Source of the DNA: Dimorphilus gyrociliatus
Taxonomy: Eukaryota > Animalia > Annelida
Assembly (NCBI GenBank): GCA_904063045.1
Contig: CAJFCJ010000013.1
Location: 664,156-728,155 of the forward strand
Direction of reading: 5' to 3'
Length of the DNA stretch: 64,000 nucleotides
The position numbers and the translations under genes are program-made. Below the pieces are notes generated by a model. That model did no database searches and was not told where the DNA came from. It saw only the letters and a list, made by a program, of their open reading frames with translations. Shown one piece after another: positions 42,570-45,500 of this stretch (position 1 is the first letter of the stretch; each line of letters begins with the position of its first letter).

Positions 42570-45500
42570 TTAGTTTGACTCCGGGGTTTCAGCTAAGGTA
42601 ACACAGTAAAATCAAAGTTAAAAAAGACATCAATCTTTACAAATATATTCAAATTCAACAAAATGGCAAAGATATTAGAAATATTCATAATTTTAAATAA
42701 ATAAGTATATACACATTCGCGTACTATATACTTATTTCCTACAATGACATATATAAATATATATATATAAGCATGTATATATATATATATATATATATAT
42801 ATATAAATATATATGTATTAGATATACAAGTATAATTATATATACATATTCGGATTATTATATATTAAAGACTATAAGTAAAGTGAATAACATTTTTTCT
42901 TAGTTACAAAAAACTCTATGCCAAAAAGAAAACATTTAAGTTCAGAAGGGCGCATTCAATATTAGTCCAATGTAAATGACCCACACAGCAATCATCCAGT
43001 AAAATTGAGTTAAAGGATTTTTACCATCTGTAAACTTCCTAGCTACAAATTTCAGCGTTTCATCCAAAATAACGACGGGCAACGAAATTTTTAATACCGC
43101 CATCCACTCTTCCAGATTTAGCGGAGTAATTTGGAAGACGGCCTAAAATTGTGGGTAAGGTATTTTCAAGAGTAAAGTGGGAAGGAAAAAACGGACAACG
43201 TTGTACTTACCGATAGAAAATCAACTTCTAAGATGAGAAAGTGTAATGACATCGAAAGAGCGATGGCACCAAGTAACCATTTATTTGACCAAGGAGGCAT
43301 AAGCGTTAGCGACTGGTTCTCGGAAATGCTGTAATCATTAGTAAGGGATGTTATAAATTTAATTTCAATTAAGCCATGTTATTACTAATTAAGTAGCAGA
43401 AACACCGTTTGGAAATAGTAATTTAAAATAATAATAATATAATAATATATAAAAGAAAGAACCAAAACAAAATTGCAAAATTGAAATTTCTAGGCATTCC
43501 TTTGGCATGCATAGTTGCGATTAGGAAAAATAAAAAGCCACTCAACCAGATGAGAAGGGCGAATTTTGCCAAAGCCCACACCTGATCGTAGAAGTCAACA
43601 GCTAACTTGCAACGAAATTATTATATAAATAATAAAAAAGATGATAAACGCTTTGTCTTAAAAAAAAATTAGGAAGTCAACAGCTTCGACGACTACTTTT
43701 CATCAGGTGTGGGATTGTGTAGAATATATTGGCAATGAAGTTAGCTGTTGACATTCCGCTACGAATTGCAGAGTGGGGGCCACAGCATAAATTGCATCCC
43801 GCTCACCTGTTCACCGCGTTCAACATTTCGATAATGACGAGAGTAGATAGGGCCATCGATGGCGGCTTGGGATTATCGAAAATGTCGCAATCGATGCCTT
43901 TAAATCTTTCGTCCTGCACTAAACATTGAGACTGGTGCGTCTAAAAAAGCCAAACACCAGCATTCAAGTAGTACAAAGCATTCAGAGAAGAAAATTAAAG
44001 GTAACAAAGAATAGACAAATTGAATCGACAAGAGAAAAAAAAGAAAAGAGTAGAGATTGAAAATTAAAAATGAAATAAAACGCGCGAATCCCACTTCCTC
44101 CAAAGCCCGACAACACAATAAAAGCAGACAAGCGATTTGTTCTTTCTTTCTCGAAAGGTTTTTTTTACCTGTTTATCGCGTTCAACATTTCAATCGTTAC
44201 TAGTACGGATAGAGCCATTGTCATTGGCTTTGGATGGTTGAAGATGCTACAATCGATACTCGGGAACATACGAGGTTCGGCCGGGCATTGCATATGATGA
44301 GTCTGAAAAAGTATTTAACAAAAAAATTTTGGGGGGAAAATTGATACTTTTGACTCCAGGCTTGCGGTAAAAATCAAATTCGTTTGATTGTTCTTCTAGA
44401 GTTCTTGTCTCGAAAAAATAAAAAAAGAGGGTAAACCGCGTCTAGGTTGCATACTAACCAATTGATAATAGTTGAGCTGAGGCCCCTTATCGTAAACAAC
44501 AAACCACCAAGCTGCGGCTCCAACTGTAGCGCATCCAACGTATCCTCCAATTGCCATATACCTGAAGAATAACCAACCGGAAATCAGTGGTTCTTGAGCA
44601 GATCTGGGAGGCTTCGTCATAATGTCTAAGTCTGGTGGGTTGAAGCCAAGTGCTGTAGCTGGTAAACCGTCAGTAACCAAGTTAACCCATAGAAGCTGAA
44701 CTGGAATCAAAGCTTCTGGCATGCCAAGAGCTGCTGTTAAGAAGATGCAAACAACCTCGCCAATGTTGGAGGAAATTAAGTATCTGATAAACTGTTTCAT
44801 GTTGTTATAAATAGCACGTCCTTCTTCGACAGCCGAAACGATAGATGTAAAGTTATCATCTGCTAAAACCATTTCTGATGCAGACTTTGCTACAGCAGTA
44901 CCAGATCCCATAGCAATACCGATTTCTGCTTTTTTGAGAGCTGGAGCATCGTTTACACCATCTCCTGTCATAGCCGAAACCTCTCCATCAGCTTGTAAAT
45001 ATTCAATAATTTTTTGTTTGTGAGCCGGCTCTACACGAGCAAATAGTCTAGCTTGTCTACAGGCCTTGGCCTGATCATCAATCGATAAGTCATCAAATTC
45101 TCTTCCTGTGAAAGCTCTGTTTTCAGTGGATTCGTTTTCTCCGAAGACACCGATACGGCGGCAAATAGCTTCAGCTGTGGCCTTGTTGTCACCTGTAATA
45201 ACGATAACGCGGATTCCAGCTCTACGGCATTGCTTGATAGCATCCATAACTTCGTAACGTGGAGGATCCAACATACCAACAACACCGACAAAGGTACAAT
45301 TTGTTTCGTATTTAATAAATTTTTTAGAATCTTCAAGATCCATATCTTCTTTCTTGACTGGTGAATCAATAGTAGCTAGGGCCAAACAACGTAAAGTATC
45401 TCTACCAGTTCCGTAATATTTAACATGCTTCATAATTTCTGCTTTGACAGCTGGTGTCATAGGCACTTTGGAAGTTCCAACGCGAACATGTGAACAACGG

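Follow-up and report, generated by a model that had tools for sequence, protein, structure and literature searches.

A predicted RNA hairpin that includes the 5′ splice site of an alternative SERCA exon in Dimorphilus gyrociliatus and its probable role in exon usage

The stretch analysed here, called the window, is 64,000 nt of the annelid Dimorphilus gyrociliatus (assembly GCA_904063045.1, contig CAJFCJ010000013.1, positions 664,156 to 728,155). Its minus strand carries, as judged by translation, a gene for SERCA, a P-type Ca2+ ATPase, which hosts all of the D. gyrociliatus elements described below; these lie on the minus strand and are given in window coordinates or as offsets from the donor (5′ splice site) of the exon called B. 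Two tandem 134-nt exons of this gene, A and B, encode by translation alternative versions of loop L7-8 and helix M8, and the intron after exon B contains competing inverted repeats. On balance, our analysis favours these repeats being part of a structured RNA module of ~265 nt in the SERCA pre-mRNA, which starts at the exon B 5′ splice site and is likely to control the usage of exon B. The hairpin formed by this module probably helps to decide which of the two exons is used.

Results

The preliminary description of this intron had reported a perfect 15-bp and a perfect 12-bp inverted repeat that cross each other and begin about 55 nt after the exon B donor, together with a second copy of one arm, and all of this was reproduced. 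The segment at 43594-43608 (a2) is the perfect reverse complement of 43738-43752 (a1, GUCAACAGCUAACUU), and 43575-43586 (b2, AUCAGGUGUGGG) is that of 43702-43713 (b1, CCCACACCUGAU). The sequence GAAGTCAACAGCT occurs both at 43591-43603 and at 43673-43685 (a2′), and the second occurrence offers an alternative 10-bp partner (43676-43685) for 43743-43752, the full a1:a2′ helix consisting of these 10 bp, a one-base bulge and a further 4 bp. On the RNA the elements follow the exon B donor in the order a1 (+55 to +69), b1 (+94 to +105), a2′ (+122 to +134), a2 (+199 to +213) and b2 (+221 to +232), in which a1:a2 and b1:b2 cross and the first element starts 55 nt past the donor. When the 478-nt intron was shuffled 300 times with its dinucleotides preserved, the longest perfect inverted repeat always fell short of 15 bp (the maximum was 13, seen once) and the second-longest always short of 12. 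Ordered by stacking energy, the three helices are the best, second and third of the intron and were matched by 1, 0 and 0 of 200 shuffles, respectively. The arms resemble three rearranged copies of one ~40-nt unit.

In a two-species RNAalifold consensus, the 15-bp a1:a2 helix is the core of a 59-pair imperfect stem, in which -3 to +71 pairs with +196 to +260 (43809-43736 with 43611-43547), beginning in the last three bases of exon B. The 5′ strand of this main stem (43736-43809) includes the exon B 5′ splice site CAGGUGAG (43802-43809), a segment named b0 (43769-43781) and a1, while the 3′ strand (43547-43611) includes a2, b2 and CUCAUCUG (43547-43554), which pairs with the splice site. The duplex between 43806-43738 and the segment running from a2 through 43549 has an energy of -61.1 kcal/mol compared with -28.7 ± 3.9 kcal/mol for shuffled sequences, and none of 300 shuffles was as good. 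The donor helix CAGGUGAG:CUCAUCUG (-3 to +5 with +253 to +260) is predicted to be paired with a probability of 0.8-1.0 in all ensembles, and the nucleotides of the donor are base-paired in the favoured predicted fold, as they are in stems that occlude a 5′ splice site. The apical loop of 129 nt holds b1 and a2′ as a rearranged extra copy (43660-43713; copy II, here the loop copy), in which a spacer separates the two and which competes with both strands of the stem, while b2 sits in the stem opposite b0 (43781-43769).

Single sites in this module have several mutually exclusive partners, as a1 can pair with a2 (15 bp) or with a2′ (10 + 4 bp), and b2 can pair perfectly with b1 (12 bp) or imperfectly with b0 in the main stem. 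The resulting folds were compared as intron ensembles, in which S1 (a1:a2 forced) reached -114.1 kcal/mol and S3 (b1:b2 forced) -112.6 kcal/mol in D. gyrociliatus. In the relative described below, S1 reached -101.2 and S3 -103.7 kcal/mol, and -176.8 and -175.8 kcal/mol with flanking exons. S1 and S3 differ by 1.5-2.5 kcal/mol in both species when only the intron is folded, and by no more than ~5 kcal/mol in longer contexts; the two folds are predicted to be nearly isoenergetic in both species, the gap between them being much smaller than the error of the energy model. On steric grounds, both helices could conceivably form at once in a pseudoknot, whose connecting loops would be 24, 93 and 7 nt.

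A close relative was found by word search in Logan contigs, as two identical contigs (L009 and L010) from two runs. Its protein and the product of the large SERCA exon share 94% identity, and the 3-kb contig aligns across the introns with 84% identity, while the four-fold degenerate sites of the large SERCA exon differ at 37.6% between D. gyrociliatus and the relative. Against this divergence, the hairpin block at 43545-43806 (+1 to +262) has only 11 mismatches in 255 aligned sites (P about 2e-36). Both stem strands (0/69 and 0/62) and the loop copy (0/50) are free of substitutions, 0/181 in total, and the 11 mismatches are confined to the other 72 nt, which are loop spacer. A single 4-nt deletion in the loop copy of the relative leaves 11 of the 12 bp of b1:b2. 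The conserved block extends to within a few bases of the end of the 3′ strand of the main stem; just past this point conservation collapses, and the 3′ part of the intron, with 59 mismatches in 137 sites and many gaps, resembles neutral sequence. Judging by these counts, the block is under strong purifying selection.

Exons A and B differ from those of the relative at 5 and 3 of 134 positions, respectively, far fewer than the constitutive exons. Since four-fold sites differ at 37.6%, synonymous sites in both alternative exons are, on this comparison, constrained. Three intronic islands are also conserved between the two species, one upstream of exon A (44303-44375, island 1), one in the intron between A and B (44078-44137, island 2) and one upstream of exon B (43941-44002, island 3). 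Conserved alternative exons together with intronic islands are usually taken as the signature of regulated alternative exons, and the pattern here would fit it. Island 2 contains GGGCUUUGG..AUUCGC, which is also present in the 3′ stem strand (43577-43557), and AGGAAGU. Two complementarities of this island were observed, between GGGCUUUGG and UCCAAAGCC in exon A (44234-44226, 9 bp), and between AGGAAGU and ACUUCCU in a2′. Island 3 carries GAAUGCU twice and is nearly invariant in the relative, with 2 changes in ~58 nt. When islands 1-3 were compared with the stem arms and the loop copy, pairing was at the level of shuffled sequences except for island 3 with the loop copy, where a candidate 7 + 6-bp pairing has -14.6 kcal/mol and 5 of 300 shuffles did as well, before any correction for the ten tests. 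Such a pairing would loop out exon B, and we regard it as a weak lead. Two helices predicted in D. gyrociliatus only (43984-43973 with 43656-43645, and 44094-44087 with 43716-43709) were rejected, being broken in the relative.

To extend the comparison, the SERCA loci of the annelids Capitella, Owenia and Helobdella, the nemerteans Tubulanus and Lineus, the brachiopod Lingula, the molluscs Haliotis and Argonauta, and the flatworm Macrostomum were fetched; a look-up of the Pomacea SERCA locus found none. Both exon types are present in the same order in all fetched loci except that of Helobdella. When the first 70 nt after exon B were paired with the distal intron, z was -5.9 in Dimorphilus, -4.7 in Capitella, -4.3 in Owenia, -10.4 in Tubulanus, -6.3 in Lineus and -2.1 in Lingula; the exon A donors in the same test gave a median z of -0.2, and control windows at the end of the next exon -0.6. 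On this comparison, the long hairpin goes with exon B and not with exon A. Contiguous helices that include the donor were found in Tubulanus (19 bp), Lineus (14 bp) and Haliotis (14 bp) and were matched by 0-1 of 200 shuffles. Several paired positions differ between Tubulanus and Lineus, with matching changes on the opposite strand. In Helobdella robusta (L015, 16122-16506) only an A-type exon remains, exon B having been lost, and the intron after A lacks a long hairpin and either of the boxes described next.

In Owenia, Tubulanus, Lineus, Argonauta and Haliotis a short box, GCAGGAAGU, lies +27 to +55 from the donor; Capitella has it at +10, with one change, and Lingula at +278. Six of these species carry its complement ACUUCCUGCAUG 360-650 nt farther downstream, five of them at +361 to +501 and Lineus, in the form UUCCUGCAUG, near +636; the sole candidate partner in Argonauta is ~10 kb away. 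The flanks of this box helix extend differently in each species. The distal box ACUUCCUG (L012, L013, L016 and L019) resembles ACUUACCUG, which we take to be the 5′ end of U1 small nuclear RNA (snRNA), and the proximal box CAGGAAGU is similar to a donor site in which position +2 is A instead of U; a pairing between a splice site and a U1 mimic may have been the origin of the box pair. In Lineus longissimus (L014, 23409-23424 and 25210-25225) the proximal box has two candidate partners, one of 8 bp near +636 beside two UGCAUG motifs and one of 16 bp at +1829, a possible competing pair.

The Capitella intron is of particular relevance to a1:a2. Its longest inverted repeat after exon B is 15 bp and perfect (16 bp with a G-U pair), at +90 and +222, and contains the same 10-nt core as a1:a2. 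Beside this core, five pairs are changed on both strands and still pair (AACUU:AAGUU compared with UUUAU:GUAAA), which is the only direct covariation for a1:a2. The table of Capitella-Dimorphilus pairs was anchored on the shared core, since a MAFFT alignment misplaced the 5′ arm. Taken across these loci, the design of a hairpin following exon B is ancient. The competitor in the loop is specific to the Dimorphilus lineage, because the Capitella intron has no second copy of a2 or b1.

An Rbfox-type motif, UGCAUG, is located at 43506-43511, 36 nt past the stem, where GCAUGC is invariant within diverged sequence. UGCAUG is also found in or beside the distal arm or box in Owenia, Tubulanus, Lineus, Lingula, Haliotis and Capitella. 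From sequence and predicted fold, a conserved long-range helix would bring a distal (U)GCAUG near the regulated exon, as in structures of the RNA bridge type. A search for Fox-1_C (PF12414) gave 0 matches in the D. gyrociliatus genome and equally 0 in the control genomes.

A search of the 78-Mb assembly with the 267-nt block gave a single match. Exact copies of the 15-mer are confined to its two sites here, with 5 one-mismatch matches compared with 12 for the reversed control. A transposon or miniature inverted-repeat transposable element (MITE) remnant was ruled out as the block is single-copy, and the recent transposon origin that the preliminary description had allowed for is further contradicted by the 0/181 substitutions relative to the four-fold divergence. 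No Rfam 15 family came near its gathering score, the best hit scoring 20.4 bits (E = 3.4) where the gathering score is 140. A small nucleolar RNA (snoRNA) C box, UGAUGA beside b1, was rejected as it is destroyed in the relative by the 4-nt deletion, and a degenerate third exon copy was rejected as an origin of the arms, local alignment scores being at the level of shuffles. A pattern scan of metagenomes (helix core, gap, helix core) returned 41 matches, about the number expected by chance as estimated for 20 specified bases and 31 gap lengths, and none had SERCA exons.

Exon A occupies 44169-44302 and exon B 43807-43940 (donor GT at 43806-43805), both identified by translation and splice sites. 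They share the same phase, have normal splice sites and are separated by an intron of 228 nt. The 478-nt intron after exon B (43329-43806) has the donor CAG/GTGAGC and the acceptor TTACAG/C, and the next exon starts from 43328. The large upstream SERCA exon is identical to that of DgyrCDS9416 of D. gyrociliatus, which uses exon A, as does the database protein P0121, which served as the full-length query while the exons were searched by reference. Among 242 fetched proteins both A-type and B-type sequences occur, never together in one protein, and B-type exons were found singly in transcripts and proteins of many Spiralia. As 134 is not a multiple of three, products with both exons or with neither are expected to shift the frame, and mutual exclusivity of A and B may therefore be enforced downstream by nonsense-mediated decay. 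Our literature searches, in a limited library, found no description of this hairpin or of the SERCA exon pair in Spiralia; the pair, whose alternatives differ in a luminal loop and in a helix of a calcium site, is apparently new to the literature.

Other arrangements of SERCA exons were observed in these loci. In the Owenia fusiformis locus (L013, 63669-74736) the M8 exon is present four times, as three A-type copies (63669, 65158 and 74086) and one of B-type (74603), and pieces of its upstream exons are duplicated too. The intron between A and B in Macrostomum lignano (L018, 14203-14255) is just 53 nt, which may allow steric exclusion of splicing from A to B. In the D. gyrociliatus gene itself there is a second pair of alternative exons, in which two segments of the minus strand (46563-46574 and 46194-46205) are complementary. 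The first copy, whose exon end is at 46574, has the donor UGUAAGUUUCAA, and 11 of its 12 positions can pair with UUAAAACUUACA, ~46 nt past the donor of the second copy. Pairing between them would loop out the second copy, although the complementarity alone is not above chance.

Discussion

The preliminary description had proposed an RNA switch for the choice between exons A and B, similar to the competing pairings of arthropod Dscam1, 14-3-3zeta and Mhc. Much of this proposal agrees with our results, as the elements are RNA-level, non-random, single-copy and under strong purifying selection, lie beside an alternative exon, and give two mutually exclusive predicted folds of near-equal energy in both species. 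The analogy to the three arthropod genes is the part that did not hold, with all of the strong helices located after exon B and no selector for exon A found above chance.

We infer that the RNA would fold in vivo as predicted and that its fold would change the ratio of exon A to exon B. In S1, the 59-bp stem with its a1:a2 core would hold the splice site CAGGUGAG paired at its base. The loop copy could then invade the stem, b1:b2 (12 bp) displacing the lower stem and a1:a2′ displacing the core, to give S3 or a pseudoknot. The stem could hide or weaken access to the exon B donor and, as an RNA bridge, shorten the path to the downstream GCAUG element, while the loop copy would set the stability of the stem. 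Because the splice-site helix is predicted to persist in both folds, the switch would not simply open and close the donor; a toggle would rather alter how the helix at the base is buttressed.

Several observations weigh against a module that controls exon B. The 8-bp splice-site helix of D. gyrociliatus is not above chance by itself (matched by 101 of 200 shuffles), and it is predicted to be paired in S1 and S3 alike. No covariation was seen within Dimorphilus, as the arms are identical in the sole close relative available, and the conservation also covers segments that pair in neither fold. The compensation in Capitella depends on anchoring the comparison on the shared core, the energy of the helix in its GC-rich intron is marginal alone (12 of 200 shuffles), and a second copy of a2 or b1 is absent there. 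A long hairpin follows exon B in Capitella, Owenia, Tubulanus and Lineus, but no significant one was seen in Argonauta and Macrostomum, which have both exons as well. Only two specific helices are significant in Haliotis, where the 70-nt duplex score is not.

As the entire block is conserved, including its unpaired segments, conservation alone cannot separate an RNA structure from protein-binding sites. The block could be a cluster of enhancer or silencer sites (GCAUG of Rbfox type, and pyrimidine-rich or GGAAG-type sites) whose complementarity is secondary or incidental. The conserved segments that pair in neither fold would be expected of such a cluster, as would the GCAUG conserved outside the stem and the UGCAUG within the ancient distal box. 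We nevertheless consider it unlikely, since it leaves unexplained why there are 59 consecutive predicted pairs, why the block boundary coincides with the end of the stem, why Capitella has five compensatory changes on both sides, and why the donor-proximal sequences of Tubulanus, Lineus and Haliotis differ and each has its own distal complement. A strict docking and selector arrangement, in which a2 and a2′ are contested by a1 and by a selector of exon A (island 2, through AGGAAGU) and pairing with the latter loops out B, is in our view improbable. Island 2 is indeed strongly conserved and repeats GGGCUUUGG..AUUCGC of the 3′ stem strand, AGGAAGU/ACUUCCU is the ancient box pair of other species, and in Lingula the sequence UAGGAAGUUG, located 20 nt past exon A, can pair with the distal box of that species. 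The energies, however, are those of chance, both for island 2 with the 5′ arm (-34.4 compared with -30.8 ± 4.1 kcal/mol; 55 of 300 shuffles) and with the loop copy (-28.0 compared with -26.0 ± 3.9 kcal/mol; 82 of 300). AGGAAGU and ACUUCCU form a helix of no more than 7 bp, and of the 8-bp candidate next to it (44094-44087 with 43716-43709) just 5 bp survive in the relative, where both strands have changed. Seven of nine species lack such a box after exon A, the two matches being marginal against ~0.4 expected. The strict model is not supported for this intron, since nothing near exon A was seen to pair with the arms better than chance.

Two explanations without a role in splicing were also weighed. 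The likeness of the arms to three rearranged copies of a ~40-nt unit could suggest that they have no function and arose neutrally, through local duplication and inversion, or are what is left of a transposon or MITE. This is very hard to reconcile with a single-copy block that is older than the split from a species at 37.6% four-fold divergence, has 0/181 substitutions in its arms and loop copy and has a helix core in common with Capitella. Equally far-fetched is an intron-hosted small RNA gene, such as a snoRNA or a microRNA precursor, unrelated to splice choice. A conserved, structured intron with the C-box-like UGAUGA beside b1 is what such a gene might look like, but no Rfam family was above chance, UGAUGA is lost in the relative, and a 129-nt apical loop on a stem that contains a splice site is unlike the precursors of either class.

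Returning to the module that controls exon B, a more ambitious version of it is possible, though we hold it to be doubtful. The device would be older than the split of annelids, nemerteans and molluscs and would consist of an exon B donor held in a stem beside a U1-like, GCAUG-bearing distal box; with the internal competitor of Dimorphilus and the islands after A and before B, it would make a two-state toggle between the exons. If true, it would be among the most deeply conserved intronic splicing structures known in animals. To our knowledge, the conservation of splicing-regulatory structures in introns does not usually reach beyond a class or phylum, and few such structures have been described in animals other than insects and vertebrates. 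The hairpin offers a compact, testable model (~265 nt in Dimorphilus) in which structure, GCAUG and splice-site masking come together at mutually exclusive exons, and a handle on the roles of the two SERCA pump isoforms.

Competing docking and selector pairings have been described in arthropods for Dscam1 exons 4, 6 and 9, 14-3-3zeta and Mhc (reviewed in PMC10790352; evolutionary model in PMC6071210). The SERCA intron shares with them conserved intronic complementary boxes at tandem exclusive exons, and a box with more than one partner, but the selectors there lie beside each alternative exon, whereas the significant helices here are all in the intron after exon B. In ATE1, multiple competing RNA structures (R1-R5) regulate exons 7a and 7b (PMC7797038). 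Several conserved intronic elements with alternative or nested helices around an exclusive pair are common to ATE1 and SERCA; the competing elements of ATE1 flank both exons and an ultra-long helix loops them out, which is not seen here.

The pairing of donor nucleotides resembles MAPT exon 10, which is cited in a review (PMC10790352) for a short local hairpin that occludes the 5′ splice site, and a long-range intronic pairing that shortens the intron resembles Drosophila CG33298 and Gug, where such pairings both bridge and block splice sites (PMC10790352). The MAPT stem is short and local, whereas the partner here is 250-670 nt downstream and the stem has 59 pairs. The closest precedent is the vertebrate SCN-alpha exon pair 5a/5b, where intronic elements form an RNA structure that acts as an RNA bridge with Rbfox2, as supported by minigenes, antisense oligonucleotides and Rbfox2 knockdown (PMC12772994). 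The SERCA hairpin, predicted from sequence, differs from it in clade and gene, in having the splice site within the stem and in its internal competitor. What the two have in common is an exclusive exon pair in an ion-transport gene, with ancient intronic complementary elements and GCAUG sites.

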